This document shows positions 337-61,900 of a stretch of DNA of 64,000 nucleotides, in pieces (the first letter of the stretch is position 1; every line of letters begins with the position of its first letter). The position numbers were made by a program, and so were the translations under genes. The stretch lies in NCBI GenBank assembly GCA_977017575.1, contig CDRNVI010000059.1, forward strand, positions 415,113 through 479,112, written 5' to 3'. Under the pieces are notes generated by a model. That model saw only the letters and a list, made by a program, of their open reading frames with translations, searched no databases and was not told where the DNA came from. The stretch comes from Paramoeba atlantica. Its lineage: Eukaryota; Protista; Discosea.

Positions 337-367
337 TTGCGGTAGTAAAACTACCGCTCTAGCCTCG

Positions 368-28429: not shown

Positions 28430-28443
28430 GTTTTTGAAGAATA

Positions 28444-37400: not shown

Positions 37401-40400
37401 AAAAACAAAGGTCTTCAAAAAAACAAAGGTCTTCAAAAAAACAAAGGTCTTCAAAAAAACAAAGGTCTTCAAAAAAACAAAGGTCTTCAAAAAAACAAAG
37501 GTCTTCAAAAAAATAAAGGTCTTCAAAAAAACAAAGGTCTTCAAAAAAACAAAGGTCTTCAAAAAAACAAAGGTCTTCAAAAAAACAAGGGTCTTTAAAA
37601 AAAAAAGGGTCTTCAAAAAAACAAAGGTCTTTAAAAAAACAAAGGTCTTCAAAAAAACAAAAGTCTTCAAAAAAACAAAGGTCTTCAAAAAAACAAAGGT
37701 CTTCAAAAAAACAAAGGTCTTCAAAAAAGCAAAGGTCTTCAAAAAAACAAAGGTCTTCAAAAAACAAAGGTCTTCAAAAAAACAAAGGTCTTCAAAAAAA
37801 CAAAGGTCTTCAAAAAAACAAAGGTCTTCAAAAAAACAAAGGTCTTCAAAAAAACAAAGGTCTTCAAAAAAACAAAGGTCGTCAAAAAACAAAGGTCTTC
37901 AAAAAAACAAAGGTCTTCAAAAAAACAAAGGTCTTCAAAAAAACAAAGGTCTTCAAAAAAACAAAGGTCTTCAAAAAAACAAAGGTCTTCAAAAAAACAA
38001 AGGTCTTCAAAAAAACAAAGGTCTTCAAAAAAACAAAGGTCTTTAAAAAAAACAAAGGTCTTCAAAAAAACAAAGGTCTTCAAAAAAACAAAGGTCTTCA
38101 AAAAATCAAAGGTCTTCAAAAAAACAAAGGTCTTCAAAAAAACAAAGGTCTTCAAAAAAACAAAGGTCTTCAAAAAAAACAAAGGTCTTCAAAAAAACAA
38201 AGGTCTTCAAAAAAACAAAGGTCTTCAAAAAAACAAAGGTCTTCAAAAAAACAAAGGTCTTCAAAAAAACAAAGGTCTTCAAAAAAACAAAGGTCTTCAA
38301 AAAAACAAAGGTCTTCAAAAAAACAAAGGTCTTCAAAAAAACAAAGGTCTTCAAAAAAACAAAGGTCTTCAAAAAAACAAAGGTCTTCAAAAAAACAAAG
38401 GTCTTCAAAAAAACAAAGGTCTTCAAAAAAACAAAGGTCTTCAAAAAAACAAAGGTCTCCAAAAAAACAAAGGTCTTCAAAAAAACAAAGGTCTTCAAAA
38501 AAACAAAGGTCTTCAAAAAAAAAAAGGTCTTCAAAAAAACAAAGGTCTTCAAAAAAACAAAGGTCTTCAAAAAAACAAAGGTCTTCAAAAAAACAAAGGT
38601 CTTCAAAAAAACAAAGGTCTTCAAAAAAACAAAGGTCGTCAAAAAACAAAGGTCTTCAAAAAAACAAAGGTCTTCAAAAAAACAAAGGTCTTCAAAAAAA
38701 CAAAGGTCTTCAAAAAAACAAAGGTCTTCAAAAAAACAAAGGTCTTCAAAAAAACAAAGGTCTTCAAAAAAACAAAGGTCTTCAAAAAAACAAAGGTCTT
38801 TAAAAAAAACAAAGGTCTTCAAAAAAACAAAGGTCTTCAAAAAAACAAAGGTCTTCAAAAAATCAAAGGTCTTCAAAAAAACAAAGGTCTTCAAAAAAAC
38901 AAAGGTCTTCAAAAAAACAAAGGTCTTCAAAAAAAACAAAGGTCTTCAAAAAAACAAAGGTCTTCAAAAAAACAAAGGTCTTCAAAAAAACAAAGGTCTT
39001 CAAAAAAACAAAGGTCTTCAAAAAAACAAAGGTCTTCAAAAAAACAAAGGTCTTCAAAAAAACAAAGGTCTTCAAAAAAACAAAGGTCTTCAAAAAAACA
39101 AAGGTCTTCAAAAAAACAAAGGTCTTCAAAAAAACAAAGGTCTTCAAAAAAACAAAGGTCTTCAAAAAAACAAAGGTCTTCAAAAAAACAAAGGTCTTCA
39201 AAAAAACAAAGGTCTTCAAAAAAACAAAGGTCTTCAAAAAAACAAAGGTCTTCAAAAAAACAAAGGCCTTCAAAAAAACAAAGGTCTTCAAAAAAACAAA
39301 GGTCTTCAAAAAAACAAAGGTCTTCAAAAAAACAAAGGTCTTCAAAAAAACAAAGGTCTTCAAAAAAACAAAGGTCTTTAAAAAAAACAAAGGTCTTCAA
39401 AAAAAATAAAGGTCTTCAAAAAAACAAAGGTCTTCAAAAAAACAAAGGTCTTCAAAAAAACAAAGGTCTTCAAAAAAACAAAGGTCTTCAAAAAAACAAA
39501 GGTCTTCAAAAAAACAAAGGTCTTCAAAAAAACAAAGGTCTTTAAAAAAAACAAAGGTCTTCAAAAAAACAAAGGTCTTCAAAAAAACAAAGGTCTTCAA
39601 AAAATCAAAGGTCTTCAAAAAAACAAAGGTCTTCAAAAAAACAAAGGTCTTCAAAAAAACAAAGGTCTTCAAAAAAAACAAAGGTCTTCAAAAAAACAAA
39701 GGTCTTCAAAAAAACAAAGGTCTTCAAAAAAACAAAGGTCTTCAAAAAAACAAAGGTCTTCAAAAAAACAAAGGTCTTCAAAAAAACAAAGGTCTTCAAA
39801 AAAACGAAAGTCTTCAAAAAAACAAAGGTCTTCAAAAAAACAAAGGTTTTCAAAAAAACAAAGGTCTCCAAAAAAACAAAGGTCTTCAAAAAAACAAAGG
39901 TCTTCAAAAAAACAAAGGTCTTCAAAAAAACAAAGGTCTTTAAAAAAAACAAAGGTCTTCAAAAAAACAAAGGTCTTCAAAAAAACAAAGGTCTTCAAAA
40001 AAACAAAGGTCTTCAAAAAAACAAAGGTCTTCAAAAAAATAAAGGTCTTCAAAAAAACAAAGGTCTTCAAAAAAACAAAGGTCTTCAAAAAAACAAAGGT
40101 CTTCAAAAAAACAAGGGTCTTTAAAAAAAAAAGGGTCTTCAAAAAAACAAAGGTCTTCAAAAAAACAAAGGTCTTCAAAAAAACAAAGGTCTTCAAAAAA
40201 AACAAAGGTCTTCAAAAAAACAAAGGTCTTCAAAAAAACAAAGGTCTTCAAAAAAACAAAGGTCTTCAAAAAAACAAAGGTCTTCAAAAAAATAAAGGTC
40301 TTCAAAAAAACAAAGGTCTTCAAAAAAACAAAGGTCTTCAAAAAAACAAAGGTCTTCAAAAAAACAAAGGTCTTCAAAAAAACAAAGGTCTTCAAAAAAA

Positions 40401-43400
40401 ACAAAGGTCTTCAAAAAAACAAAGGTCTTCAAAAAAACAAAGGTCTTCAAAAAAACAAAGGTCTTCAAAAAAACAAAGGTCTTCAAAAAAAATAAAGGTC
40501 TTCAAAAAAACAAAGGTCTTCAAAAAAACAAAGGTCTTCAAAAAAACAAAGGTCTTCAAAAAAACAAAGGTCTTCAAAAAAACAAAGGTCTTCAAAAAAA
40601 CAAAGGCCTTCAAAAAAACAAAGGTCTTCAAAAAAACAAAGGTCTTCAAAAAAACAAAGGTCGTCAAAAAACAAAGGTCTTCAAAAAAACAAAGGTCTTC
40701 AAAAAATCAAAGGTCTTCAAAAAAACAAAGGTCTTCAAAAAAACAAAGGTCTTCAAAAAAACAAAGGTCTTCAAAAAAACAAAGGTCTTCAAAAAAACAA
40801 AGGTCTTCAAAAAAACAAAGGTCTTCAAAAAAAAACAAAGGTCTTCAAAAAAACAAAGGTCTTCAAAAAAACAGAGGTCTTCAAAAAAACAAAGGTCTTC
40901 AAAAAAACAAAGGTCTTCAAAAAAACAAAGGTCTTTAAAAAAAACAAAGGTCTTCAAAAAAACAAAGGTCTTCAAAAAAACAAAGGTCTTCAAAAAAACA
41001 GAGGTCTTCAAAAAAACAAAGGACTTCAAAAAAATAAAGGTCTTCGAAAAAACAAAGGTCTTCAAAAAAACAAAGGTCTTCAAAAAAACAAAGGTCTTCA
41101 AAAAAACAAAGGTCTTCAAAAAAAAACAAAGGTCTTCAAAAAAACAAAGGTCTTCAAAAAAACAAAGGTCTTCAAAAAAACAAAGGTCTTCAAAAAAACA
41201 AAGGTCTTCAAAAAAACAAAGGTCTTCAAAAAAACAAAGGTCTTCAAAAAAACAAAGGTCTTCAAAAAAACAAAGGTCTTCAAAAAAACAAAGGTCTTCA
41301 AAAAATCAAAGGTCTTCAAAAAATCAAAGGTCTTCAAAAAAACAAAGGTCTTTAAAAAAAACAAAGGTCTTCAAAAAAACAAAGGTCTTCAAAAAAACAA
41401 AGGTCTTCAAAAAAACAAAGGTCTTCAAAAAAACAAAGGTCTTCAAAAAAACAAAGGTCTTCAAAAAAACAAAGGTCTTCAAAAAAACAAAGGTCTTCAA
41501 AAAAACAAAGGTCTTCAAAAAAACAAAGGTCTTCAAAAAAACAAAGGTCTTCAAAAAAAGAAAGGTCTTCAAAAAAACAAAGGTCTTTAAAAAAACAAAG
41601 GTCTTCAAAAAAACAAAGGTCTTCAAAAAAACAAAGGTCTTCAAAAAAACAAAGGTCTTCAAAAAAACAAAGGTCTTCAAAAAAACAAAGGTCTTCAAAA
41701 AAACAAAGGTCTTCAAAAAAACAAAGGTCTTCAAAAAAACAAAGGTCTTCAAAAAAACAAAGGTCTTCAAAAAAACAAAGGTCTTTAAAAAAAACAAAGG
41801 TCTTCAAAAAAACAAAGGTCTTCAAAAAAAACAAAGGTCTTCAAAAAATCAAAGGTCTTCAAAAAAACAAAGGTCTTCAAAAAAACAAAGGTCTTCAAAA
41901 AAACAAAGGTCTTCAAAAAAAACAAAGGTCTTCAAAAAAACAAAGGTCTTCAAAAAAACAAAGGTCTTCAAAAAAACAAAGGTCTTCAAAAAAACAAAGG
42001 TCTTCAAAAAAACAAAGGTCTTCAAAAAAACAAAGGTCTTCAAAAAAACAAAGGTCTTCAAAAAAACAAAGGTCTTCAAAAAAACAAAGGTCTTCAAAAA
42101 AACAAAGGTCTTCAAAAAAACAAAGGTCTTTAAAAAAAACAAAGGTCTTCAAAAAAACACAGGTCTTCAAAAAAACAAAGGTCTTCAAAAAAACAAAGGT
42201 CTTCAAAAAAACAAAGGTTTTCAAAAAAACAAAGGTCTCCAAAAAAACAAAGGTCTTCAAAAAAACAAAGGTCTTCAAAAAAACAAAGGTCTTCAAAAAA
42301 ACAAAGGTCTTCAAAAAAACAAAGGTCTTCAAAAAAACAAAGGTCTTCAAAAAAACAAAGGTCTTCAAAAAAACAAAGGTCTTCAAAAAAACAAAGGTCT
42401 TCAAAAAAACAAAGGTCTTCAAAAAAACAATGGTCTTCAAAAAAACAAAGGTCTTTAAAAAAAAACAAAGGTCTTCAAAAAAACAAAGGTCTTCAAAAAA
42501 ACAAGGGTCTTCAAAAAAACAAAGGTCTTCAAAAAAACAAAGGTCTTCAAAAAAAACAAAGGTCTTCAAAAAAACAGAGGTCTTCAAAAAAACAAAGGTC
42601 TTCAAAAAAACAAAGGTCTTCAAAAAAACAAAGGTCTTCAAAAAAACAAAGGTCTTCAAAAAAACAAAGGTCTTCAAAAAAACAAAGGTCTTCAAAAAAA
42701 AAAAGGTCTTCAAAAAAACAAAGGTCTTCAAAAAAACAAAGGTCTTCAAAAAAATAAAGGTCTTCAAAAAAACAAAGGTCTTCAAAAAAACAAAGGTCTT
42801 CAAAAAAACAAAGGTCTTCAAAAAAAAAAAGGTCTTCAAAAAAACAAAGGTCTTCAAAAAAACAAAGGCCTTCAAAAAAACAAAGGTCTTCAAAAAAACA
42901 AAGGTCTTCAAAAAAACAAAGGTCGTCAAAAAACAAAGGTCTTCAAAAAAACAAAGGTCTTCAAAAAATCAAAGGTCTTCAAAAAAACAAAGGTCTTCAA
43001 AAAAAGAAAGGTCTTCAAAAAAACAAAGGTCTTCGAAAAAACAAAGGTCTTCAAAAAAACAAAGGTCTTCAAAAAAACAAAGGTCTTCAAAAAAAAACAA
43101 AGGTCTTCAAAAAAACAAAGGTCTTCAAAAAAACAAAGGTCTTCAAAAAAACAAAGGTCTTCAAAAAAACAAAGGTCTTCAAAAAAACAAAGGTCTTCAA
43201 AAAAATAAAGGTCTTCAAAAAAACAAAGGTCTTCAAAAAAACAAAGGTCTTCAAAAAAACAAAGGTCTTCAAAAAAACAAGGGTCTTCAAAAAAAATAAA
43301 GGTCTTCAAAAAAACAAAGGTCTTCAAAAAAAAACAAAGGTCTTCAAAAAAAAACAAAGGTCTTCAAAAAAACAAAGGTCTTCAAAAAAACAAAGGTCTT

Positions 43401-46400
43401 CAAAAAAACCAAGGTCTTCAAAAAAAGAAAGGTCTTCCAAAAAACAAAGGTCTTCAAAAAAACAAAGGTCTTCAAAAAAACAAAGGTCTTCAAAAAAACA
43501 AAGGTCTTTAAAAAAAACAAAGGTCTTCAAAAAAACAAAGGTCTTCAAAAAAACAAAGGTCTTCAAAAAAACAAAGGTTTTCAAAAAAACAAAGGTCTTC
43601 TAAAAAACAAAGGTCTTCAAAAAAACAAAGGTCTTCAAAAAAACAAAGGTCTTCAAAAAAACAAAGGTCTTCAAAAAAACAAAGGTCTTCAAAAAAACAA
43701 AGGTCTTCAAAAAAACAAAGGTCGTCAAAAAACAAAGCTCTTCAAAAAAACAAAGCTCTTCAAAAAAACAAAGGTCTTCAAAAAAACAAAGGTCTTCAAA
43801 AAAACAAAGGTCTTTAAAAAAACAAAGGTCTTCAAAAAAACAAAGGTCTTCAAAAAAATAAAGGTCTTCAAAAAAACAAAGGTCTTCAAAAAAACAAAGG
43901 TCTTCAAAAAAACAAAGGTCTTCAAAAAAAAAAAGGTCTTCAAAAAAACAAAGGTCTTCAAAAAAACAAAGGCCTTCAAAAAAACAAAGGTCTTCAAAAA
44001 AACAAAGGTCTTCAAAAAAACAAAGGTCGTCAAAAAACAAAGGTCTTCAAAAAAACAAAGGTCTTCAAAAAATCAAAGGTCTTCAAAAAAACAAAGGTCT
44101 TCAAAAAAAGAAAGGTCTTCAAAAAAACAAAGGTCTTCGAAAAAACAAAGGTCTTCAAAAAAACAAAGGTCTTCAAAAAAACAAAGGTCTTCAAAAAAAA
44201 ACAAAGGTCTTCAAAAAAACAAAGGTCTTCAAAAAAACAAAGGTCTTCAAAAAAACAAAGGTCTTCAAAAAAACAAAGGTCTTCAAAAAAACAAAGGTCT
44301 TCAAAAAAATAAAGGTCTTCAAAAAAACAAAGGTCTTCAAAAAAACAAAGGTCTTCAAAAAAACAAAGGTCTTCAAAAAAACAAGGGTCTTCAAAAAAAA
44401 TAAAGGTCTTCAAAAAAACAAAGGTCTTCAAAAAAAAACAAAGGTCTTCAAAAAAAAACAAAGGTCTTCAAAAAAACAAAGGTCTTCAAAAAAACAAAGG
44501 TCTTCAAAAAAACCAAGGTCTTCAAAAAAAGAAAGGTCTTCCAAAAAACAAAGGTCTTCAAAAAAACAAAGGTCTTCAAAAAAACAAAGGTCTTCAAAAA
44601 AACAAAGGTCTTTAAAAAAAACAAAGGTCTTCAAAAAAACAAAGGTCTTCAAAAAAACAAAGGTCTTCAAAAAAACAAAGGTTTTCAAAAAAACAAAGGT
44701 CTTCTAAAAAACAAAGGTCTTCAAAAAAACAAAGGTCTTCAAAAAAACAAAGGTCTTCAAAAAAACAAAGGTCTTCAAAAAAACAAAGGTCTTCAAAAAA
44801 ACAAAGGTCTTCAAAAAAACAAAGGTCGTCAAAAAACAAAGCTCTTCAAAAAAACAAAGCTCTTCAAAAAAACAAAGGTCTTCAAAAAAACAAAGGTCTT
44901 CAAAAAAACAAAGGTCTTTAAAAAAACAAAGGTCTTCAAAAAAACAAAGGTCTTCAAAAAAACAAAGGTCTTCAAAAAAACAAAGGTCTTCAAAAAAACA
45001 AAGGTCTTCAAAAAATCAAAGGTCTTCAAAAAATCAAAGGTCTTCAAAAAAAACAAAGGTCTTCAAAAAAACAAAGGTCTTCAAAAAAACAAAGGTCTTC
45101 AAAAAAACAAAGGTCTTCAAAAAAACAAAGGTCTTCAAAAAAACAAAGGTCTTCAAAAAACAAAGGTCTTCAAAAAAACAAAGGTCTTCAAAAAAACAAA
45201 GGTCTTTAAAAAAAACAAAGGTCTTCAAAAAAACAAAGGTCTTCAAAAAAACAAAGGTCTTCAAAAAAACAAAGGTCTTCAAAAAAACAAAGGTCTTCAA
45301 AAAAACAAAGGTCTTCAAAAAAACAAAGGTCTTCAAAAAAACAAAGGTCTTCAAAAAAAACAAAGGTCTTCAAAAAAACAAAGGTCTTCAAAAAAACAAA
45401 GGTCTTCAAAAAAACAAAGGTCTTCAAAAAAACAAAGGTCTTCAAAAAAACAAAGGTCTTCAAAAAAAATAAAGGTCTTCAAAAAAACAAAGGTCTTCAA
45501 AAAAACAAAGGTCTTCAAAAAAACAAAGGTCTTCAAAAAAAAAAAGGTCTTCAAAAAAACAAAGGTCTTCAAAAAAACAAAGGCCTTCAAAAAAACAAAG
45601 GTCTTCAAAAAAACAAAGGTCTTCAAAAAAACAAAGGTCGTCAAAAAACAAAGGTCTTCAAAAAAACAAAGGTCTTCAAAAAAACAAAGGTCTTCAAAAA
45701 AACAAAGGTCTTCAAAAAAAAACAAAGGTCTTCAAAAAAACAAAGGTCTTCAAAAAAACAAAGGTCTTCAAAAAAACAAAGGTCTTCAAAAAAACAAAGG
45801 TCTTCAAAAAAACAAAGGTCTTTAAAAAAAACAAAGGTCTTCAAAAAAACAAAGGTCTTCAAAAAAACAAAGGTCTTCAAAAAAACAAAGGTCTTCAAAA
45901 AAATAAAGGTCTTCAAAAAAACAAAGGTCTTCAAAAAAACAAAGGTCTTCAAAAAAACAAAGGTCTTCAAAAAAACAAGGGTCTTCAAAAAAAATAAAGG
46001 TCTTCAAAAAAACAAAGGTCTTCAAAAAAAAACAAAGGTCTTCAAAAAAAAACAAAGGTCTTCAAAAAAACAAAGGTCTTCAAAAAAACCAAGGTCTTCA
46101 AAAAAAGAAAGGTCTTCCAAAAAACAAAGGTCTTCAAAAAAACAAAGGTCTTCAAAAAAACAAAGGTCTTCAAAAAAACAAAGGTCTTTAAAAAAAACAA
46201 AGGTCTTCAAAAAAACAAAGGTCTTCAAAAAAACAAAGCTCTTCAAAAAAACAAAGCTCTTCAAAAAAACAAAGGTCTTCAAAAAAACAAAGGTCTTCAA
46301 AAAAACAAAGGTCTTTAAAAAAACAAAGGTCTTCAAAAAAACAAAGGTCTTCAAAAAAACAAAGGTCTTCAAAAAAACAAAGGTCTTCAAAAAAACAAAG

Positions 46401-49400
46401 GTCTTCAAAAAATCAAAGGTCTTCAAAAAATCAAAGGTCTTCAAAAAAAACAAAGGTCTTCAAAAAAACAAAGGTCTTCAAAAAAACAAAGGTCTTCAAA
46501 AAAACAAAGGTCTTCAAAAAAACAAAGGTCTTCAAAAAAACAAAGGTCTTCAAAAAACAAAGGTCTTCAAAAAAACAAAGGTCTTCAAAAAAACAAAGGT
46601 CTTTAAAAAAAACAAAGGTCTTCAAAAAAACAAAGGTCTTCAAAAAAACAAAGGTCTTCAAAAAAACAAAGGTCTTCAAAAAAACAAAGGTCTTCAAAAA
46701 AACAAAGGTCTTCAAAAAAACAAAGGTCTTCAAAAAAACAAAGGTCTTCAAAAAAAACAAAGGTCTTCAAAAAAACAAAGGTCTTCAAAAAAACAAAGGT
46801 CTTCAAAAAAACAAAGGTCTTCAAAAAAACAAAGGTCTTCAAAAAAACAAAGGTCTTCAAAAAAAATAAAGGTCTTCAAAAAAACAAAGGTCTTCAAAAA
46901 AACAAAGGTCTTCAAAAAAACAAAGGTCTTCAAAAAAAAAAAGGTCTTCAAAAAAACAAAGGTCTTCAAAAAAACAAAGGCCTTCAAAAAAACAAAGGTC
47001 GTCAAAAAACAAAGGTCTTCAAAAAAACAAAGGTCTTCAAAAAAACAAAGGTCTTCAAAAAAACAAAGGTCTTCAAAAAAAAACAAAGGTCTTCAAAAAA
47101 ACAAAGGTCTTCAAAAAAACAAAGGTCTTCAAAAAAACAAAGGTCTTCAAAAAAACAAAGGTCTTCAAAAAAACAAAGGTCTTTAAAAAAAACAAAGGTC
47201 TTCAAAAAAACAAAGGTCTTCAAAAAAACAAAGGTCTTCAAAAAAACAAAGGTCTTCAAAAAAATAAAGGTCTTCAAAAAAACAAAGGTCTTCAAAAAAA
47301 CAAAGGTCTTCAAAAAAACAAAGGTCTTCAAAAAAACAAGGGTCTTCAAAAAAAATAAAGGTCTTCAAAAAAACAAAGGTCTTCAAAAAAAAACAAAGGT
47401 CTTCAAAAAAAAACAAAGGTCTTCAAAAAAACAAAGGTCTTCAAAAAAACAAAGGTCTTCAAAAAAACCAAGGTCTTCAAAAAAAGAAAGGTCTTCAAAA
47501 AAACAAAGGTCTTCAAAAAAACAAAGGTCTTCAAAAAAACAAAGGTCTTCAAAAAAACAAAGGTCTTTAAAAAAAACAAAGGTCTTCAAAAAAACAAAGG
47601 TCTTCAAAAAAACAAAGCTCTTCAAAAAAACAAAGCTCTTCAAAAAAACAAAGGTCTTCAAAAAAACAAAGGTCTTCAAAAAAACAAAGGTCTTTAAAAA
47701 AACAAAGGTCTTCAAAAAAACAAAGGTCTTCAAAAAAACAAAGGTCTTCAAAAAAACAAAGGTCTTCAAAAAAACAAAGGTCTTCAAAAAATCAAAGGTC
47801 TTCAAAAAATCAAAGGTCTTCAAAAAAAACAAAGGTCTTCAAAAAAACAAAGGTCTTCAAAAAAACAAAGGTCTTCAAAAAAACAAAGGTCTTCAAAAAA
47901 ACAAAGGTCTTCAAAAAAACAAAGGTCTTCAAAAAACAAAGGTCTTCAAAAAAACAAAGGTCTTCAAAAAAACAAAGGTCTTTAAAAAAAACAAAGGTCT
48001 TCAAAAAAACAAAGGTCTTCAAAAAAACAAAGGTCTTCAAAAAAACAAAGGTCTTCAAAAAAACAAAGGTCTTTAAAAAAAACAAAGGTCTTCAAAAAAA
48101 CAAAGGTCTTCAAAAAAACAAAGGTCTTCAAAAAAACAAAGGTCTTCAAAAAAACAAAGGTCTTCAAAAAAACAAAGGTCTTCAAAAAAACAAAGGTCTT
48201 CAAAAAAACAAAGGTCTTCAAAAAATCAAAGGTCTTCAAAAAAACAAAGGTCTTCAAAAAAACAAAGGTCTTCAAAAAAACAAAGGTCTTCAAAAAAACA
48301 AAGGTCTTTAAAAAAAACAAAGGTCTTCAAAAAAACAAAGGTCTTCAAAAAAACAAAGGTCTTCAAAAACACAAAGGTCTTCAAAAAAACAAAGGTCTCC
48401 AAAAAAACAAAGGTCTTCAAAAAAACAAAGGTCTTCAAAAAAACAACGGTCTTCAAAAAAACAAAGGTCTTCAAAAAAACAAAGGTCTTTAAAAAAAACA
48501 AAGGTCTTCAAAAAAACAAAGGTCTTCAAAAAAACAAAGGTCTTCAAAAAAACAAAGGTCTTCAAAAAAACAAAGGTCTTCAAAAAAACAAAGGTCTTCA
48601 AAAAAACAAAGGTCTTCAAAAAAACAAAGGTCTTCAAAAAAAGAAAGGTCTTCAAAAAAACAAAGGTCTTCAAAAAAACAAAGGTCTTCAAAAAAACAAA
48701 GGTCTTCAAAAAAACAAAGGTCTTCAAAAAAACAAAGGTCTTCAAAAAAACAAAGGTCTTCAAAAAAACAAAGGTCTTCAAAAAAACAAAGGTCTTCAAA
48801 AAAACAAACGTCTTCAAAAAAACAAAGGTCTTTAAAAAAAACAAAGGTCTTCAAAAAAACAAAGGTCTTCAAAAAAACAAAGGTCTTCAAAAAAACAAAG
48901 GTTTTCAAAAAAACAGAGGTCTCCAAAAAAACAAAGGTCTTCAAAAAAACAAAGGTCTTCAAAAAAACAAAGGTCTTCAAAAAAACAAAGGTCTTCAAAA
49001 AAACAAAGGTCTTCAAAAAAACAAAGGTCTTCAAAAAAACAAAGGTCTTCAAAAAAACAAAGGTCTTCAAAAAAACAAAGGTCTTTAAAAAAAACAAAGG
49101 TCTTCAAAAAAACAAAGGTCTTCAAAAAAACAAAGGTCTTCAAAAAAACAAAGGTCTTCAAAAAAACAAAGGTCTTCAAAAAAACAACGGTCTTCAAAAA
49201 AACAAAGGTCTTCAAAAAAACAAAGGTCTTTAAAAAAAACAAAGGTCTTCAAAAAAACAAAGGTCTTCAAAAAAACAAAGGTCTTCAAAAAAACAAAGGT
49301 CTTCAAAAAAACAAAGGTCTTCAAAAAAACAAAGGTCTTCAAAAAAACAAAGGTCTTCAAAAAAACAAAGGTCTTCAAAAAAACAAAGGTCTTCAAAAAA

Positions 49401-52400
49401 ACAAAGGTCTTCAAAAAAACAAAGGTCTTCAAAAAAACAAAGGTCTTCAAAAAAAGAAAGGTCTTCAAAAAAACAAAGGTCTTCAAAAAAACAAAGGTCT
49501 TCAAAAAAACAAAGGTCTTCAAAAAAACAAAGGTCTTCAAAAAAACAAAGGTCTTCAAAAAAACAAAGGTCTTCAAAAAAACAAAGGTCTTCAAAAAAAC
49601 AAAGGTCTTCAAAAAAACAAAGGTCTTTAAAAAAAATAAAGGTCTTCAAAAAAACAAAGGTCTTCAAAAAAACAAAGGTCTTCAAAAAAAAACAAAGGTC
49701 TTCAAAAAAACAAAGGTCTTCAAAAAAACAAAGGTCTTCAAAAAAACAAAGGTCTTCAAAAAAACAAAGGTCTTCAAAAAAACAAAGGTCTCCAAAAAAA
49801 CAAAGGTCTTCAAAAAAACAAAGGTCTTCAAAAAAACAAAGGCCTTCTAAAAAACAAAGGTCTTCAAAAAAGCAAAGGTCTTTAAAAAAAACAAAGGTCT
49901 TCAAAAAAACAAAGGTCTTCAAAAAAACAAAGGTCTTCAAAAAAAGAAAGGTCTTCAAAAAAACAAAGGTCTTCAAAAAAACAAAGGTCTTCAAAAAAAC
50001 AAAGGTCTTTAAAAAAATCAAAGGTCTTCAAAAAAACAAAGGTCTTCAAAAAAACAAAGGTCTTCAAAAAAAAACAAAGGTCTTCAAAAAAACAAAGGTC
50101 TTCAAAAAAACAAAGGTCTTCAAAAAAACAAAGGTCTTCAAAAAAACAAAGGTCTTCAAAAAAACAAAGGTCTTCAAAAAAACAAAGGTCTTCAAAAAAA
50201 CAAAGGTCTTCAAAAAAACTAAGGTCTTCAAAAAAACAAAGGTCTTCAAAAAAACAAAGGTCTTCAAAAAAACAAAGGTCTTCAAAAAAACAAAGGTCTT
50301 CAAAAAAACAAAGGTCTTCAAAAAAACAAAGGTCTTCAAAAAAACAAAGGTCTTCAAAAAAACAAAGGTTTTCAAAAAAACAAAGGTCTTCAAAAAAACA
50401 AAGGTCTTCAAAAAAACAAAGGTCTTCAAAAAAACAAAGGTCTTCAAAAAAACAAAGGTCTTCAAAAAAACAAAGGTCTTCAAAAAAACAAAGGTCTTCA
50501 AAAAAACAAAGGTCGTCAAAAAACAAAGGTCTTCAAAAAAACAAAGGTCTTCAAAAAAACAAAGGTCTTCAAAAAAACAAAGGTCTTCAAAAAAACAAAG
50601 GTCTTCAAAAAAACAAAGGTCTTTAAAAAAAACAAAGGTCTTCAAAAAAACAAAGGTCTTCAAAAAAACAAAGGTCTTCAAAAAAACAAAGGTCTTCAAA
50701 AAAACAAAGGTCTTCAAAAAAACAAAAATCTTCAAAAAAACAAAGGTCTTCAAAAAAACAAAGGTCTTCAAAAAAACAAAGGTTTTCAAAAAAACAAAGG
50801 TCTTCAAAAAAACAAAGGTCTTCAAAAAAACAAAGGTCTTCAAAAAAACAAAGGTCTTCAAAAAAACAAAGGTCTTCAAAAAAACAAAGGTCTTCAAAAA
50901 AACAAAGGTCTTCAAAAAAACAAAGGTCTTTAAAAAAAACAAAGGTCTTCAAAAAAACAAAGGTCTTCAAAAAAACAAAGGTCTTCAAAAAAACAAAGGT
51001 CTTCAAAAAATCAAAGGTCTTCAAAAAAACAAAGGTCTTCAAAAAAACAAAGGTCTTCAAAAAAACAAAGGTCTTCAAAAAAACAAAGGTCTTTAAAAAA
51101 AACAAAGGTCTTCAAAAAAACAAAGGTCTTCAAAAAAACAAAGGTCTTCAAAAAAACAAAGGTTTTCAAAAAAACAAAGGTCTCCAAAAAACCAAAGTCT
51201 TCTAAAAAACAAAGGTCTTCAAAAAAACAAAGGTCTTCAAAAAAACAAAGGTCTTCAAAAAAACAAAGGTCTTTAAAAAAAACAAAGGTCTTCAAAAAAA
51301 CAAAGGTCTTCAAAAAAACAAAGGTCTTCAAAAAAAAACAAACGTCTTCAAAAAAACAAAGGTCTTCAAAAAAACAAAGGTCTTCAAAAAAACAAAGGTC
51401 TTCAAAAAAACAAAGGTCTTCAAAAAAACAAAGGTCTTCAAAAAAACAAAGGTCTTCAAAAAAACAAAGGTCTTCAAAAAAAGAAAGGTCTTCAAAAAAA
51501 ACAAAGGTCTTCAAAAAAACAAAGGTCTTCAAAAAAACAAAGGTCTTCAAAAAAACAAAGGTCTTCAAAAAAACAAAGGTCTTCAAAAAAACAAAGGTCT
51601 TCAAAAAAACAAAGGTCTTCAAAAAAACAAAGGTTTTCAAAAAAACAAAGGTCTTCAAAAAAACAAAGGTCTTCAAAAAAACAAAGGTCTTCAAAAAAAC
51701 AAAGGTTTTCAAAAAAACAAAGGTCTTCAAAAAAACAAAGGTCTTCAAAAAAACAAAGGTCTTCAAAAAAACAAAGGTCTTCAAAAAAACAAAGGTCTTC
51801 AAAAAAACAAAGGTCTTCAAAAAAACAAAGGTCGTCAAAAAACAAAGGTCTTCAAAAAAACAAAGGTCTTCAAAAAAACAAAGGTCTTCAAAAAAACAAA
51901 GGTCTTCAAAAAAACAAAGGTCTTCAAAAAAACAAAGGTCTTCAAAAAAAAACAAAGGTCTTCAAAAAAACAAAGGTCTTCAAAAAAACAAAGGTCTTCA
52001 AAAAAACAAAGGTCTTCAAAAAAACAAAGGTCTTCAAAAAAACAAAGGTCTTCAAAAAAACAAAGGTCTTCAAAAAAACAAAGGTCTTCAAAAAAACCAA
52101 GGTCTTCAAAAAAAACAAAGGTCTTCAAAAAAACAAAGGTCTTCAAAAAAACAAAGGTCTTCAAAAAAACAAAGGTCTTCAAAAAAACAAAGGTCTTCAA
52201 AAAAACAAAGGTCTTCAAAAAAACAAAGGTCTTCAAAAAAACAAAGGTCTTCAAAAAGACAAAGGTCTTCAAAAAAACAAAGGTCTCCAAAAAAACAAAG
52301 GTCTTCAAAAAAACAAAGGTCTTCAAAAAAACAAAGGCCTTCTAAAAAACAAAGGTCTTCAAAAAAGCAAAGGTCTTTAAAAAAAACAAAGGTCTTCAAA

Positions 52401-55400
52401 AAAACAAAGGTCTTCAAAAAATCAAAGGTCTTCAAAAAAACAAAGGTCTTCAAAAAAACAAAGGTCTTCAAAAAAACAAAGGTCTTCAAAAAAACAAAGG
52501 TCTTCAAAAAAACAAAGGTCTTCAAAAAAACAAAGGTCTTCAAAAAAACAAAGGTCTTTAAAAAAAACAAAGGTCTTCAAAAAAACAAAGGTCTTCAAAA
52601 AAACAAAGGTCTTCAAAAAAAAACAAAGGTCTTCAAAAAAACAAAGGTCTTCAAAAAAACAAAGGTCTTCAAAAAAACAAAGGTCTTCAAAAAAACAAAG
52701 GTCTTCAAAAAAACAAAGGTCTTCAAAAAAACAAAGGTCTTCAAAAAAACAAAGGTCTTCAAAAAAAACAAAGGTCTTCAAAAAAACAAAGGTCTTCAAA
52801 AAAACAAAGGTCTTCAAAAAAACAAAGGTCTTCAAAAAAACAAAGGTCTTCAAAAAAACAAAGGTCTTCAAAAAAACAAAGGTCTTCAAAAAAACAAAGG
52901 TTTTCAAAAAAACAAAGGTCTTCTAAAAAACAAAGGTCTTCAAAAAAACAAAGGTCTTCAAAAAAACAAAGGTCTTCAAAAAAACAAAGGTCTTCAAAAA
53001 AACAAAGGTCTTCAAAAAAACAAAGGTCTTCAAAAAAACAAAGGTCGTCAAAAAACAAAGGTCTTCAAAAAAACAAAGGTCTTCAAAAAAACAAAGGTCT
53101 TCAAAAAAACAAAGGTCTTCAAAAAAACAAAGGTCTTCAAAAAAACAAAGGTCTTTAAAAAAAACAAAGGTCTTCAAAAAAACAAAGGTCTTCAAAAAAA
53201 TAAAGGTCTTCAAAAAAACAAAGGTCTTCAAAAAAACAAAGGTCTTCAAAAAAACAAAGATCTTCAAAAAAACAAAGGTCTTCAAAAAAACAAAGGTCTT
53301 CAAAAAAACAAAGGTTTTCAAAAAAACAAAGGTCTCCAAAAAAACAAAGGTCTTCAAAAAAACAAAGGTCTTCAAAAAAACAAAGGCCTTCTAAAAAACA
53401 AAGGTCTTCAAAAAAGCAAAGGTCTTTAAAAAAAACAAAGGTCTTCAAAAAAACAAAGGTCTTCAAAAAAACAAAGGTCTTCAAAAAAACAAAGGTCTTC
53501 AAAAAAACAAAGGTCTTCAAAAAAAGAAAGGTCTTTAAAAAAAACAAAGGTCTTCAAAAAAACAAAGGTCTTCAAAAAAACAAAGGTCTTCAAAAAAAAA
53601 CAAAGGTCTTCAAAAAAACAAAGGTCTTCAAAAAAACAAAGGTCTTCAAAAAAACAAAGGTCTTCAAAAAAAATAAAGGTCTCCAAAAAAACAAAGGTCT
53701 TCAAAAAAACAAAGGTCTTCAAAAAAACAAAGGTCTTCAAAAAAACAAAGGTCTTCAAAAAAACAAAGGTCTTCAAAAAAACAAAGGTCTTTAAAAAAAA
53801 CAAAGGTCTTCAAAAAAACAAAGGTCTTCAAAAAAACAAAGGTCTTCAAAAAAACAAAGGTCTTCAAAAAAAAACAAAGGTCTTCAAAAAAACAAAGGTC
53901 TTCAAAAAAACAAAGGTCTTCAAAAAAACAAAGGTCTTCAAAAAAACAAAGGTCTTCAAAAAAACAAAGGTCTTCAAAAAAAAACAAAGGTCTTCAAAAA
54001 AACAAAGGTCTTCAAAAAAACAAAGGTCTTCAAAAAAACAAAGGTCTTCAAAAAAACAAAGGTCTTCAAAAAAACAAAGGTCTTCAAAAAAACAAAGGTC
54101 TTCAAAAAAACAAAGGTCTTCAAAAAAACAAAGGTCTTCAAAAAAAACAAAGGTCTTCAAAAAAACAAAGGTCTTCAAAAAAACAAAGGTCTTCAAAAAA
54201 ACAAAGGTCTTCAAAAAAACAAAGGTCTTCAAAAAAACAAAGGTCTTCAAAAAAACAAAGGTCTTCAAAAAAACAAAGGTCTTCAAAAAGACAAAGGTCT
54301 TCAAAAAAACAAAGGTCTCCAAAAAAACAAAGGTCTTCAAAAAAACAAAGGTCTTCAAAAAAACAAAGGCCTTCTAAAAAACAAAGGTCTTCAAAAAAGC
54401 AAAGGTCTTTAAAAAAAACAAAGGTCTTCAAAAAAACAAAGGTCTTCAAAAAATCAAAGGTCTTCAAAAAAACAAAGGTCTTCAAAAAAACAAAGGTCTT
54501 CAAAAAAACAAAGGTCTTCAAAAAAACAAAGGTCTTCAAAAAAACAAAGGTCTTCAAAAAAACAAAGGTCTTCAAAAAAACAAAGGTCTTTAAAAAAAAC
54601 AAAGGTCTTCAAAAAAACAAAGGTCTTCAAAAAAACAAAGGTCTTCAAAAAAAAACAAAGGTCTTCAAAAAAACAAAGGTCTTCAAAAAAACAAAGGTCT
54701 TCAAAAAAACAAAGGTCTTCAAAAAAACAAAGGTCTTCAAAAAAACAAAGGTCTTCAAAAAAACAAAGGTCTTCAAAAAAACAAAGGTCTTCAAAAAAAA
54801 CAAAGGTCTTCAAAAAAACAAAGGTCTTCAAAAAAACAAAGGTCTTCAAAAAAACAAAGGTCTTCAAAAAAACAAAGGTCTTCAAAAAAACAAAGGTCTT
54901 CAAAAAAACAAAGGTCTTCAAAAAAACAAAGGTTTTCAAAAAAACAAAGGTCTTCTAAAAAACAAAGGTCTTCAAAAAAACAAAGGTCTTCAAAAAAACA
55001 AAGGTCTTCAAAAAAACAAAGGTCTTCAAAAAAACAAAGGTCTTCAAAAAAACAAAGGTCTTCAAAAAAACAAAGGTCGTCAAAAAACAAAGGTCTTCAA
55101 AAAAACAAAGGTCTTCAAAAAAACAAAGGTCTTCAAAAAAACAAAGGTCTTCAAAAAAACAAAGGTCTTCAAAAAAACAAAGGTCTTTAAAAAAAACAAA
55201 GGTCTTCAAAAAAACAAAGGTCTTCAAAAAAATAAAGGTCTTCAAAAAAACAAAGGTCTTCAAAAAAACAAAGGTCTTCAAAAAAACAAAGATCTTCAAA
55301 AAAACAAAGGTCTTCAAAAAAACAAAGGTCTTCAAAAAAACAAAGGTTTTCAAAAAAACAAAGGTCTCCAAAAAAACAAAGGTCTTCAAAAAAACAAAGG

Positions 55401-56618
55401 TCTTCAAAAAAACAAAGGCCTTCTAAAAAACAAAGGTCTTCAAAAAAGCAAAGGTCTTTAAAAAAAACAAAGGTCTTCAAAAAAACAAAGGTCTTCAAAA
55501 AAACAAAGGTCTTCAAAAAAACAAAGGTCTTCAAAAAAACAAAGGTCTTCAAAAAAAGAAAGGTCTTTAAAAAAAACAAAGGTCTTCAAAAAAACAAAGG
55601 TCTTCAAAAAAACAAAGGTCTTCAAAAAAAAACAAAGGTCTTCAAAAAAACAAAGGTCTTCAAAAAAACAAAGGTCTTCAAAAAAACAAAGGTCTTCAAA
55701 AAAAATAAAGGTCTTCAAAAAAACAAAGGTCTTCAAAAAAACAAAGGTCTTCAAAAAAAAACAAAGGTCTGCAAAAAAACAAAGGTCTTCAAAAAAACAA
55801 AGGTCTTCAAAAAAACAAAGGTCTTCAAAAAAACAAAGGTCTTCAAAAAAACAAAGGTCTTCAAAAAAACAAAGGTCTTTAAAAAAAACAAAGGTCTTCA
55901 AAAAAACAAAGGTCTTCAAAAAAACAAAGGTCTTCAAAAAAACAAAGGTCTTCAAAAAAACAAAGGTCTTCAAAAAAACAAAGGTCTTCAAAAAAAAACA
56001 AAGGTCTTCAAAAAAACAAAGGTCTTCAAAAAAACAAAGGTCTTCAAAAAAACAAAGGTCTTCAAAAAAACAAAGGTCTTCAAAAAAAGAAAGGTCTTCA
56101 AAAAAAGAAATGTCTTCAAAAAAACAAAGGTCTTCAAAAAAACAAAGGTCTTCAAAAAAACAAAGGTCTTCAAAAAAACAAAGGTCTTCAAAAAGCAAAG
56201 GTCTTCAAAAAAACAAAGGTCTCCAAAAAAACAAAGGTCTTCAAAAAAACAAAGGTCTTCAAAAAAACAAAGGCCTTCAAAAAAACAAAGGTCTTCAAAA
56301 AAACAAAGGTCTTCAAAAAAACAAAGGTCTTCAAAAAAACAAAGGTCTTCAAAAAACAAAGGTCTTCAAAAAAACAAAGGTCTTCAAAAAAACAAAGGTC
56401 TTCAAAAAAACAAAGGTCTTCAAAAAAACAAAGGTCTTCAAAAAAACAAAGGTCTTCAAAAAAGCAAAGGTCTTCAAAAAACAAAGGTCTTCAAAAAAAC
56501 AAAGGTCTTCAAAAAAACAAAGGTCTTCAAAAAAACAAAGGTCTTCAAAAAAACAAAGGTCTTCAAAAAAACAAAGGTCTTCAAAAAAACAAAGGTCTTC
56601 AAAAAAGGAAAGGTCTTC
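28444..56618. repeat. Satellite array, 18-bp monomer CAAAGGTCTTCAAAAAAA, roughly 1560 monomers (length/18), 72% AT
   Basis: Directly visible; A-tract length variants and point variants recur in higher-order blocks. Confidence 0.99.
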
Positions 56619-56917
56619 AATGTCCAGCGTGTTGCCAAAAACAAACGCAAGATATCTAATACTGGGGGGGAACCGGTCAACAAAAGGGGTATATTACTTC
56701 CTACTAGTGCTGGAGTAAAATCGTCCGAAGAGAGTGAGGATCTAACCCTGGAAGCTGATTATGTTGGAAAAGATAAAAGTTATGAACAATTAAGAGTGCT
56801 TCTTGAAAAAGTGGATAATAAGAGGGAAGATTCACCTAGGAGGAAGGTGTCTTTACGAAAAACAAAACAGTAGTTTTATCAGCCGATGTAAATCGGACTT
56901 TTTGGATTGGATTTGAT
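56619..56917 (+). pseudogene. 5'-truncated LINE, right piece (ORF C-terminus, 3' hairpin, TTGGA tail)
   Basis: Open frame NVQRVAKNKRK...RKTKQ*, then CCGAT-GTAA-ATCGG at 56883-56896 and TTTTTGGATTGGATTTG, followed by TSD AGTACTGCA. Confidence 0.75.
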
Positions 56918-57784: not shown

Positions 57785-58902
57785 GACCATCTTTTTGTTA
57801 AGACCATCTTTTTGTTAATATTTTAACAAAATGACGACGGATGCGTCCGGTGCGGTCGAGGTGCGCGTTGTTCGCAAATGCCTCGATCATTCCACGCTTG
57901 GTCGGGGCTCCCTTTTTCTGCCGCCTATTCCGGTTGAAAATGAGGGTGCAAAACTCCTTCGCAGTGCGTTATCAAGTCTCATGCGCTGGATGCGTAGAGG
58001 TTGCCTTATTGCAGTCGTATGGCGGTATGATGGTTCGAGTAAATACCGACTATGGGAGGGAGATGTTATGGGAAACTTTGAGGATACTGATCGCTTCAGT
58101 GTGAAATATCATCAAAGAGCTGACCTGGTGTTTCCCTTCCCACCCATTTCCGCGAGAGTTATCATATGCGCTGTTCGAATGAGAGCGGCTCCCTCCCGGC
58201 GTAAGAGACGATGGCGTCGCTGCCCTATCTAATCGACGTCGACCGGCGAGCATGTCGATCGCGCTTTGGAGAACCAAAATGGTTCGGCTGTGAAGGAGAA
58301 GTTGTCCATAGCGACCCTGAATGTGACCTCATTAAAATTAGATGGGGGGGATTTGTTTTCTATTCGATCATGTGCCCGATTGAAGGAAATATTGACCTTT
58401 ATGAGTAGCAAGAGCATTCAGGTACTGGGTTTGCAGGAAACGAGGTTCCGTTTTTGATTCTCGTCTCTTTGGTGAGATTCTACGTCAGCAAACGGAGGAC
58501 ATGGACGTTACGTATTACTTATATTTTTCCTCAGCCACGTCCGACCGTTCTTACAACGGAATGGTGCTCGTTAGTACTTTTCCATTGGAAAAGGTGCGGG
58601 TTATCTCAGAACGGATTATGACTGCACAGTTTCCTTGGGAAAACGGGAACTCTACACTATTCAATGTGCACGGTCCCATTAGGGATTCTTCTAGGGAAAT
58701 GAATCTACCTTCGGCGCTTCTTTAAGAAAAGCCGTTCGCGATCTTGACTCCACGAACCCCCAAAGACCTACGATCTTAATGGGAGATTTTAATTCCCCTT
58801 TAACGCTGGTCAACAAAACTGCTGAAGACAAAGCAGCTGTAGCTCGATTTCGCGCCTTACTTGTAGACGTTGGTTGCAAGTCTGCCCACACTCTCTCACC
58901 AA
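57785..58902 (+). pseudogene. Degenerate LINE 5' portion (monomers, N-terminal domain, broken APE)
   Basis: GACCATCTTTTTGTTAA x2, ATG at 57831 (MTTDASG...), IATLNVTSLKL...LQETR, GDFNS; stops and frameshifts. Confidence 0.85.
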
Positions 58903-61900
58903 GATCAACCTTTTTGTAAATTTTTGCAAAATGGCGGATGCGTCCGGTGCGCAGGAGTCCACGCGCATTATGAATCTTCTTTTGCGTTCCACGCTTGATC
59001 GGGGGGCCTTGTTTCGTCCTCACAAGGGCGGGAGGAGTCCTGCTAAGCTCCGCGCGAGGTCGTTGAGACAGTTGTTTCTGCGTATGGAAAAGGGGGCGAG
59101 GCTGGCAGTGGTGTGGAGATACGGGTATAGTGATGATTTGAAGTTGTGGGAGGGGGTCGTCGAACGATGGCTTGGCTTGTGGCGCATTCGATGCACCGAG
59201 CGCCTGCGTGAAACACTTCCGTTTCCCCCTTTAAGTCCTTTGATCGTTCTCTGCGCTGCTCGTGTTTTCAAACCTTTTTCCCTGTCCAGCGGAAAAAAGC
59301 GACATCGCAAAAGTAGGGCATTGTCCGGCAAACGTGCTCTTCATGACTCGGAGGGTCCTAGAGGCCCCGCTTTGAAGGGAAAGCTTAACGTGGCAACCTT
59401 GAATGTGACTAGTTTAAAGCTAAAGGGTGAGGATGAGTTTAGTTTGAGAAAGTGCGGGCACCTGTATGAAGTATTTAATTTTATGAATATGAAAGGAATC
59501 AATATTCTGGGAATGCAGGAGACAAGGTACAGATTTTCGTCTTCTGAAAAGTCGGAGGTACTTTGCCGCAAAGTACAATACCGGAATTCGGAATATTTCT
59601 TCAACCTCATTACAGCTCGCGCGAAGGATGCGTACAATGGAATGGGCATCGTAAGCTCAATGCCTATGTCCAAGGTATTTCGAGTAAGTAAAGGATCATG
59701 GCTGGTGAATTTGAGATGGAAGACGGAGTTGGGACAGTTGTTAATGTTTATGCTCCTACAAGAGATTCTTCGGAACTCGCGCTATCAACATTTTACGGAG
59801 ATTTAGAAAAGTGTTGCACAAAAGCATTAGAAAACAATCAGCGACGCCCTCTTTTCGTGATAGGAGATTTCAACGCGCCCTTAACGCTTATATCAAACAA
59901 AGAAATGGACCCACTGGCTGTTGCTCGTCTCAGAGGTCTTTCCTGTGCTATGGGATGGAAATCCGCGCATAGCCTGTGCCCTAGTAGTAGGAAGTGGACC
60001 TGTGAGCTGCCAAACAAAACTTTGCGTCAATTGGATCATATATTTATAAGCAGCCGATTCGCATCAGCCATTCAGCGCCACAAGGTCGTAAAGGCACCAG
60101 TTCCCACAACGCACTGCTGTGCAATTGCCAGTGTAAAAATTAAATGGAGAGCAGTAAACCCGAAAGCTGCAAATAATTATCTCTCTTGGGCCTTTCTTCG
60201 AAACAGTGAAAATCGTCAAGCATTTATTACCAAAGTTCACTCTCAATCTGAGAAGGGGGGTAATATCATGCAAGGGTGGGAACGACTTTCGAACAGTATA
60301 ATAACCGCCGCCAAAAATTTTAAGAAGCGACAAAAACGTACGATAAACAGAGAACCTATTAAGCATGTGGAGATAAATAACCTGCGGGGCCTTTATCAGA
60401 GAAGCAGACAGAAGACTACGTTTAATGAGTTAATAAAAGAACATAAAAAAGATATTGAACAGACCATTTCGGAAGAATGCTTAAAACTTGAGAACAAGCT
60501 TCGCAAGAATCACTCAAATCCATGGAGAACTCTTCGGCAAATATGTGGACAATACCGTACTCAGTTCAATACAAATGGTGAGACGCGTGATATGAAACTA
60601 CAAGCGATCCGTGAACATTTCTTAAAATTCAATAATTATGATGCAGGAGATCCAAATATCAGTTTCGACCCTATTCCACCATTATTCGTGCCGATCGAGG
60701 ATGGCCCATTTATTGTTCAGGAGTTGACTTTGTCAGTGAAGCATTTTGGGAGAGGACGAGCACCCGGAAGCGACGGAATACCTATGGAGGCCCTACAAGC
60801 TATCGCAAGTCACGGAGTTCTAAGAGAGCAGCTTTTAGGTATAATAAACAAAGTTTGTGAGACCGGGTCTACGGATGAAGCTTGGCGAATGACACTCCAG
60901 ATACCCATACCAAAGAAAGGGGATCTCACTGACATTTCAAACTGGAGGCCGATATGTGTGGTGAATAGCGTTGTTAAACTGATGAATCACATGATTCTTT
61001 CACGCATTCGGCCCAGCGTAGAAGGTTTCCTACGCGATAATCAGTATGGGTTTCGGCCAAACAGATCTACAGCTGGCGCCCAAATCATTATGAACGAGGT
61101 TAAAACTAAGGCTTTTCGAAAAGACGGAATAATGGTAGCCTTTGTAGATTTTGCTAAAGCATTTCCCTCCGTATCCTTTGCTGCTATAAAAGCCTGCCTA
61201 AATGCTTTCCGAGTTGGCAATCGATTGTCCACCACAATCTTGTCCATCTATCGCGACTTGAAAGGAACAGTTCGAACGCCGTTTGGTAATACTGAACCTT
61301 TTCCAATCACCACAGGGATTCTACAAGGGGATGTATTAGCTCCCTATCTATTCGTTATGGTGATGGACAGGATTCTACACAAGGCTCTCGACGACGGATC
61401 AGATGGTGTTCTTCTGAAATCTAGAGGTACACGAAGGCGAGGGTTAAACGAAAAACGACTGAGTGATATCGATTATGCCGACGACGTCGCGCTATTTAGT
61501 GATTCGATGGAAGGTTTGCAAAATATGATAAACAGCGTTTCTCGGGAAGCAGAGAAAGCTAATCTACGACTTGCGGTTGGTCAATCGAAAACTGCATGGA
61601 TGTCTTTTGGTAAAGTTGCACGTTCCGAAAACGACCCCGTCATCTACAACAACAACTTGAAGGTACCAAAGGTGTGGTCATACAGGCATCTGGGGCAACG
61701 TCAAGATCAAGATTTTTCTTCCACCGTAAAAGATCGATTAAAGCTTGCATGGGGATCACTCCAGCGTTTAAATGGAATTTGGTCTTCTCCTCTAAGTGAA
61801 GGGATGAAACTTCGACTTTATGATGCCTTAGTTTACCCTGTTCTGAATTTTGGAATGGGAGCAGTTCATATTTCTCAAAAGGAGCTCCGTAAAATTGGTA

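Follow-up and report, generated by a model that had tools for sequence, protein, structure and literature searches.

The four LINE relatives with a complete 5' end in the DNA studied here share a leader made of one or more short T-rich monomers, a hairpin, the start codon and a conserved xASG. The analysis suggests that this arrangement is probably the 5' half of an RNA fold whose topology is that of the large HDV-like self-cleaving ribozymes, in which the RNA would cut itself 5' of the first G of the monomer (G1) and so set the 5' end of the element. The fold is about 150 nt long, reaching about 270 nt, and it overlaps the first ~45 codons of the ORF. HDV-like ribozymes at the 5' ends of LINEs are already known, as they define the 5' ends of L1Tc/ingi and R2 elements (PMC3185411, PMC4035085, PMC3774820), and P1.2 domains are known as well (PMC4908430). 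In the literature searched there was no report of tandem ribozyme 5' strands forming a 17-19 nt monomer that grows into satellites, of a ribozyme core within the first ~45 codons including the AUG, or of a CC bulge and long L3 stem in HDV-like ribozymes.

The window, by which is meant the whole stretch of 64,000 nucleotides that was analysed, is TE-dense protist DNA. When an intact 1353-aa ORF was used as the query for tblastn, four 5'-complete APE+RT+RNase H LINE relatives were found in it: copy A (28429 to 24368, minus strand), which holds the intact ORF itself, copy B (19667 to ~15359, minus strand), which is frameshifted, copy C (57831 to 58901, plus strand), which is cut short, and copy D (58931 to 62238, plus strand), which interrupts the ORF of C. 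The ORF of copy A (24368..28429, minus strand) encodes an N-terminal domain followed by APE endonuclease, reverse transcriptase and RNase H, and the Pfam domains Exo_endo_phos, RVT_1 and RNase_H were present in the same single-ORF organisation in copy A and in a relative from a JGI metagenome (L029). A search for homologous proteins with the 1353-aa ORF returned distant RT matches only, all of them without the N-terminal domain. Between the four copies the N-terminal 170 aa are 31-43% identical, and this level of sequence identity indicates that they represent old, separate and deeply diverged families. Copies B and C are decayed and have mismatches in the fold. Copy C is dead, with a stop at codon 133 and one P2 mismatch, and copy B has a mismatch at the first position of P1 and a 1-nt bulge in P2.

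Several other repeats share the window with these copies. A 5'-truncated LINE with RT and RNase H (6590-8959, minus strand) is ~40% identical to A and has no 5' module. A repeat of ~340-420 bp with a tRNA-like head occurs at 57376-57711 (minus strand), 16202-16625 and 20505-20928, with one copy inside LINE B and another 73 nt upstream of the first monomer of C; ARAGORN called no tRNA in this repeat, which is probably a tRNA-derived SINE. A ~930-bp repeat family with 77-98% identity (368-1278, 3294-4178, 8952-9864, 11690-12513, 21677-22264 and 63028-63960) contains short hairpins and (GGGGGGTCCAGGG)n and AAATTATTTTCGAAA tracts. It may be a DNA transposon, since a neighbouring ORF (2275-3288, minus strand) has weak HTH_32 and HTH_38 domains. 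The blocks 4877-5843 and 13773-14741 are 98.6% identical and consist of a long palindromic repeat together with the last ~229 nt of a B-type LINE; because that LINE has the same insertion site in both, the site was already occupied when the segment was duplicated. A tandem repeat with a 69-bp unit (3.5 copies at 20129-20366, with diverged copies out to 19767-20420) lies a few hundred bases past the 5' flank of LINE B. The nest in which C is interrupted by D was found with the same upstream flank at least three further times in the assembly, two of them on one contig. These loci (L032, L033 and L034; ENA ERZ24900291, contigs ctg3800c and ctg3806c) are duplicates of the C/D locus, the whole C/D block having been duplicated at the DNA level.

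A preliminary description of this DNA had reported the order of monomer(s), hairpin, ATG and xASG in four LINE subfamilies, and direct reading of the sequence bore out the strings and their coordinates in all four window copies, with T-rich monomers of 17-18 nt. Copy C (plus strand) has two 17-nt GACCATCTTTTTGTTAA units at 57785-57818, the proximal one at 57802-57818 and each opening with the P1 5' strand GACCA, followed by TATT, TTAACAAA and the ATG at 57831. Copy D (plus strand) has one GATCAACCTTTTTGTAAA (58903-58920), then TTTTTGCAAA and the ATG at 58931. On the minus strand, copy B has two TTTTTGTATTAA units, the hairpin and the ATG at 19667, and copy A has the last unit of an 18-mer array, TATTC, TTCAAAAA, a single C and the ATG at 28429. 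Two further claims of that description also held. The 5' arm of the hairpin is supplied by the end of the last monomer at all four sites, and the sequence of the stem changes while its pairing is kept, with G-U pairs allowed. The wobbles occur in B and D and both are U.G on the sense strand, where the antisense strand would have A.C. The description did not mention that ORF nt ~61-71 are the pairing partner of the opening 5-6 nt of the monomer, that the 'xASG' codons act as strands of RNA helices, or that the module has an HDV-like topology.

The strands of the module follow the order P1 5' strand (P1a), P1.2, P2a, P3a with GCN(U), CC bulge, L3 stem, P3b, P1b, GG, P4, J4/2 and P2b. This is the strand order of an HDV-like nested double pseudoknot, and it was found in 4/4 window copies, with a fold that was derived partly from the same sequences on which it was scored. 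P1a always starts with a G after ...UAA. P1 is formed when the first 5-6 nt of the monomer pair with the 5-6 nt directly before an invariant GGGG at ORF nt 66-72, the strands being GACCU/AGGUC in A, GACCA/UGGUC in C and GAUCAA/UUGAUC in D. In D, a Gly-to-Asp change in 'LGRG' matches a C-to-U change in the monomer. The P2 5' strand is at or beside the ATG, with ORF nt 3-9 pairing with the 'KLR' codons near nt 120, and P3 pairs the GCG(U) of 'ASG' with the (A)CGC of 'STL'. The 'ASG' codons are thus the P2a and P3a strands plus the CC bulge. A CC comes after P3a, a GG after P1b, and C-U-A-A-A stands ahead of P2b.

In copy A the module spans 28309..28461 on the minus strand, with P1a at 28461-28457, P1.2 at 28451-28444 / 28438-28431, the ATG at 28429, P2a at 28427-28421, P3a at 28420-28417, CC at 28416-28415, the L3 stem at 28414-28373, P3b at 28372-28369, P1b at 28367-28363, GG at 28362-28361, P4 at 28359-28322, the candidate catalytic C at 28320 and P2b at 28315-28309. 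P1.2, P2, P3, the CC bulge, the L3 stem and P4 are all part of the minimum free energy structure of this copy (-48.7 kcal/mol, z -2.8), in which neither P1 strand is paired, so that both are available for the pseudoknot. The module of copy B (19540..19708, minus strand) lies inside the TSD and begins with a distal partial monomer; the proximal monomer starts from 19699 with (A)AUCAC as P1a, followed by P1.2 (19691-19681 / 19678-19668), ATG 19667, P2a (19665-19659), P3a (19658-19655), P3b (19604-19601), P1b (19600-19595) and P2b (19547-19540). The coding part of copy C (57835..57961, plus strand) consists of P2a (57835-57841), P3a (57843-57846), the CC bulge (57847-57848), the L3 stem (57849-57893), P3b (57894-57897), P1b (57899-57903), GG (57904-57905), P4 (57907-57949), the candidate catalytic C (57949) and P2b (57955-57961). 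The module of copy D (58903..59053, plus strand) has P1a at 58903-58908, P1.2 at 58913-58919 / 58924-58930, the ATG at 58931, P2a at 58934-58938, P3a at 58940-58943, P3b at 58991-58994, P1b at 58995-59000, GG at 59001-59002 and P2b at 59049-59053.

Relatives were collected by an exhaustive HMMER search with the first 600 aa of A, and their DNA was examined. This gave eight further elements, L024-L027 from the same assembly and L028-L031 from other samples (L028 and L030 from two ENA metagenomes, L029 from the JGI metagenome and L031 from a Logan run), the latter four probably from other organisms. No clear P1a was found in the available sequence of L026 and L030, and L026 is without a clear 5' end. 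The strands were placed by a rule blind to the monomers: P3a was the GCNU of a single GCNTCCGG motif, P3b was the first downstream complement followed by a G-run, and P1b was the 5-6 nt before that G-run. Under this rule every upstream monomer opened with the complement of P1b in 9 elements (6 from this assembly and 3 contigs from other samples), and the HDV-like strand order was recovered in 9-12 elements.

The larger set of sequences showed covariation. In the 9 elements, 45/45 P1 cells were paired, compared with 20-42% when the partner was slid. The G1-C pair never changes, and 4-5 pair types occur at each of positions 2-5; further P1 strand pairs include GUUGAU/GUCAAC, GCCGU/GCGGC and GGGUGU/ACACCC. 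For the four window sequences, 89.7% of cells were paired against 33-45% in slid controls, with six pairs showing double changes against 0-1. For the full nested model on 12 sequences, which bears on P2 and P3, 90.6% of cells were paired against 33-50%, and there were 14 double-change cells against 0-4, a value reached by 0/500 shuffles. P2 was paired in all 11 of the aligned sequences, with A-U/G-C and G-C/C-G exchanges, and unguided RNAalifold on the 12 sequences recovered P3 and the GG/CC closure. Comparison of these sequences shows that the P1, P2 and P3 helices are real and that they covary both between families and between contigs of several samples. The earlier suggestion of a selected cis element was right.

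The strands proposed to form P1.1, a CC immediately behind P3a and a GG immediately behind P1b, occur in 12/12 sequences and are invariant, so they give no covariation readout. HDV-like ribozymes have a catalytic cytosine in J4/2 (C-N-R-A) directly before the P2 3' strand, and J4/2 here is C-N-A-A-R at this place in 11/12 sequences (CUAAA, CAAAA, CUAAG, CCAAA, CGAAA, CCAAG or CAAAG), with CGAUA in family G. L3 is made of the CC bulge and a 42-54 nt stem closed by GG/CC; this stem, leaving the CC free, and the P4 hairpin are predicted in nearly all copies despite their sequence differences. Codons at conserved residues were identical in 8/20 columns inside the fold compared to 5/52 downstream (p = 0.005), which would explain the 'xASG' noticed in the preliminary description.

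Other pairings were considered for the same region. A local P3 adjoining P1b (ACG/CGU in A, GCG/CGC in D) was rejected since it cannot form in C and would put P2 and P3 ~40 nt apart, whereas the distal P3, whose GCN(U) strand follows P2a directly, agrees with 12/12 sequences and covaries. No consistent partner was found for a 'canonical' P2 directly upstream of this local P3. A rival nested helix, CGGGG/CUCCG, pairs the end of P1b and the G-run with P2b (alignment columns 79-83 and 130-134, which in copy A correspond to about 28363-28359 and 28315-28311). In this helix 95% of cells are paired and none of them covary, and the module may adopt it as an alternative conformer that is inactive.

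A generic HDV-like descriptor matched 4/4 window copies but only 0.4-1.6% of dinucleotide shuffles. With a base rate of 0.6% across the window this descriptor is weak when taken alone, and the case rests on homologous placement and covariation. Its matches include the monomer starts 28461, 28479 and 28515. Rfam cmscan of the C, D and A modules returned no HDV-family match at E<=10 and chance matches only, with HDV-type models that cover few subfamilies and ignore pseudoknots. A pattern scan of metagenomes (GCGTCCGG..TCCACG..GRTCGGGG) gave 23 matches, all of them GC-rich bacterial chance matches. The short L3 loop of ~7-8 nt and the G.U wobble as first pair that are seen in HDV and CPEB3 were not found here, as L3 is a long stem and the first P1 pair is G-C in 9/9 elements.

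The hairpin of the leader has a stability of -3.8 to -7.3 kcal/mol (z -3.1 to -5.5) in the four window copies. In copy C (57810..57831, plus strand) its 5' arm is 57810-57818, the loop is TATT and the 3' arm is 57823-57831, which includes the A of the ATG; this hairpin has -6.0 kcal/mol and z -5.5. Similar hairpins occur in the window at ~0.003 per strand-nucleotide, and one ends at the ATG in 4/4 copies. The claim that the hairpin comes directly before the ATG stands for the window copies, but it does not extend to four related elements, in which the ATG is within the hairpin. In these elements, of families G, I, J and M, the ATG is in the loop or straddles the 5' arm and loop, with loops of 4 to 120 nt, and this contradicts the translation-start hairpin that had been proposed. 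Loop length is 4-6 nt in A, C, D, F and I and rises to 13 nt in K, 51 nt in M and 120 nt in J. In all elements the hairpin abuts P1 and P2, also where a loop of 51 or 120 nt contains the ATG, its 5' arm beginning 0-7 nt after P1a and its 3' arm ending 0-6 nt before P2a. The constant feature of the hairpin is therefore that it bridges P1 and P2, not its nearness to the start codon. In large HDV-like ribozymes this is where the P1.2 helix of J1/2 sits. Of the three functions that the preliminary description offered for the leader, '5'-end completion signal' comes closest.

The monomers also form long arrays. The array that ends in the leader of copy A (28444..56620, minus strand) has the monomer GACCTTTGTTTTTTTGAA in 1557 copies over 28 kb, so that P1a and P1.2a recur with each intact unit. 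A second 18-mer array (3..338, plus strand) with GACAACGTTTTTTATTAA x18.7 has the same construction. The first 6 nt of its unit, GACAAC, match the family-I P1b GTTGTC (L027) as a perfect complement, and on this sequence match the array is probably the leader array of an I-like LINE. This array stops mid-unit, just ahead of the ~930-bp repeat, whose copies align from 368. Long upstream arrays of their own 18-19 nt monomer were found in L024, L025 and L027. For the C-type monomer, contig word depth at 57784-57847 was 13,613 (X2) and 178,892 (X3), compared with ~250-760 beside it, so this 17-mer must form very large arrays elsewhere in the genome. Fifteen contigs showed further monomers upstream in other C copies, and a second C-family copy had one extra monomer with the hairpin retained. 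The sequencing runs searched were contig-type runs of one study plus a single putative RNA run, and the latter gave no signal for this sequence.

Two of the copies bear on where the element begins. Copy B is flanked by the TSD GCGGCAGATT at 19718-19709 and at 14512-14503, and its flanks rejoin into one arm of a palindromic repeat with an intact copy at 5476-5520. The position of the TSD places both monomers and the ~41-nt leader inside the element, in agreement with the preliminary description. The 5' end of B falls within a distal monomer, and its 5' nucleotide is ambiguous by 0-4 nt owing to GATT/TT microhomology with the target. Other C-family contigs continue past 58903 with different sequence, so the 5' end of D is G1 or A2 of its monomer.

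Three other explanations of the module have to be weighed against self-cleavage. The conserved pseudoknot may be real and non-cutting, serving as a platform for the element's own protein or as an IRES-like start-codon structure. The 5' RNA of R2, for instance, binds the R2 protein. Such a role would be in line with the AUG inside the fold, with an L3 region that is atypical of HDV-like ribozymes and with the lack of an Rfam match, and all of the covariation evidence bears on structure, not on catalysis. However, the strand order, the +1 G, the CC/GG, the C-N-A-A before P2b and the placement of P1.2 together agree with the HDV-like design in every point, and the 5' end of D coincides with the predicted cut site, which makes a structure that does not cut unlikely.

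The monomers could also be mini-promoter or initiator units, comparable to mouse L1 5' monomers and Pr77, with transcription starting at G1 and with the hairpin and P1 pairing tuning translation or RNA stability. Tandem T-rich units ending in UAA|G, and genomic 5' ends at or near the start of a monomer, fit this idea, and since Pr77 of L1Tc is both promoter and ribozyme (PMC3383444) the two roles can coexist. The monomers may thus have a promoter or initiator role alongside the ribozyme. As a replacement for the ribozyme it is quite improbable, because it leaves unexplained both the double-pseudoknot order and the pairing of 5-6 nt of the monomer with codons ~100-210 nt downstream in every P1 cell. 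The third explanation, that the monomers are target-DNA satellites (landing pads) outside the element and that the palindrome is an artefact of the junction, has in its favour that copy A adjoins a 28-kb array. A satellite-targeting LINE would have the repeats as target outside its TSD, but the monomers of B are inside the TSD, the single monomer of D lies inside the C ORF and begins exactly where that interrupted ORF stops, and the monomer of each family covaries with its own ORF. These observations already contradict the target-DNA explanation, which is given almost no weight here.

The ribozyme reading can be compared with known systems. With L1TcRz/Pr77 (PMC3185411, PMC4035085, PMC3383444) the elements studied here share a single-ORF APE+RT+RNase H organisation, a 5'-terminal HDV-like fold, read in both as freeing the element RNA from co-transcripts, and a cut 5' of the first ribozyme nucleotide, which here is predicted. 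Judging from its description, Pr77 is set apart as a single 77-nt unit, whereas P1a and P1.2a here make up a 17-19 nt T-rich tandem unit present from 1 to >1,500 times; in addition, the core here lies in the first ~45 codons and has a P1.2 helix and an L3 stem. The drz-Agam-2 ribozyme (Webb et al. 2016, PMC4908430) likewise has a base-paired J1/2 helix with short linkers to P1 and P2. Its P1.2 'pinches' P1 and P2 and makes cleavage up to ~1000-fold faster, an effect that saturates near 4 kcal/mol (PMC4908430), and the hairpins in the window are at or above about this level of stability. In contrast, Agam-2 combines a large P1.2 domain with a P2 of 12 bp, while the P1.2 helix here is AU-rich, has 7-12 bp, takes its 5' arm from the repeated monomer and has a loop of up to 120 nt that can include the start codon. 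The HDV-like ribozymes of R2 (PMC3774820) also process a LINE 5' end out of a co-transcript, as is proposed here, but R2 is an RLE-type element, site-specific in 28S rDNA, and its ribozyme is not built of tandem monomers. A role in translating the uncapped product has been proposed for the R2 ribozyme, as cited in PMC4908430.

Mouse L1 elements, too, are headed by tandem 5' monomers of variable number, with the last unit joined to a unique leader, and the LINEs described here are alike in this respect. The monomers of mouse L1 are promoter units of ~200 bp, whereas those here are 17-19 nt and carry strands of RNA helices.

If the ribozyme reading is correct, the element RNA would be made by read-through or monomer-driven transcription and would cut itself just 5' of the monomer G1, which would define the 5' end of the element. 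The hairpin would act like the 'pinch' of Agam-2 P1.2 and keep P1 beside P2, the GG after P1b would pair with the CC bulge as P1.1, and the C of J4/2 would be the candidate catalytic C. Upstream monomers would then be spare substrate (P1a) and P1.2a strands, through which RNAs with two or more monomers could arise and seed arrays. Insertion of a multi-monomer RNA is shown by the two monomers of copy B. The arrays would grow by template jumps and/or by duplication at the DNA level. With its start codon embedded in the fold, the uncapped RNA may also be open to cap-independent translation.

More tentatively, the ribozyme substrate strand (P1a with the 5' arm of P1.2) might itself be the unit of the satellite repeat, with cDNA of the cleaved end re-annealing to other monomers, and RT template jumps, followed by DNA-level amplification, giving arrays of tens of kb. 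This extension is possible rather than probable. If it is true, satellite DNA could arise from catalytic RNA by a general route, operating across a LINE clade seen both in this assembly and among contigs of four other samples, with a catalytic core that lies in protein-coding sequence and includes the start codon.

Confirmation of cleavage would mean that an HDV-like core doubles as the first ~45 codons of an ORF, that a long stem has replaced the L3 loop and that the 5' strands of a ribozyme exist as a 17-19 nt tandem repeat that can expand to 28-kb satellites, three unusual traits combined in one ribozyme. It would also account for the conservation of xASG...LGRG...AKLR down to synonymous sites. 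The natural variants found here, with P1.2 loops of 4-120 nt and from 1 to >1500 monomers, would then bear on how peripheral helices and repeated substrates tune the action of a ribozyme and the inheritance of LINE 5' ends, and the abundant ~18-bp satellites of this genome would have a concrete molecular origin.
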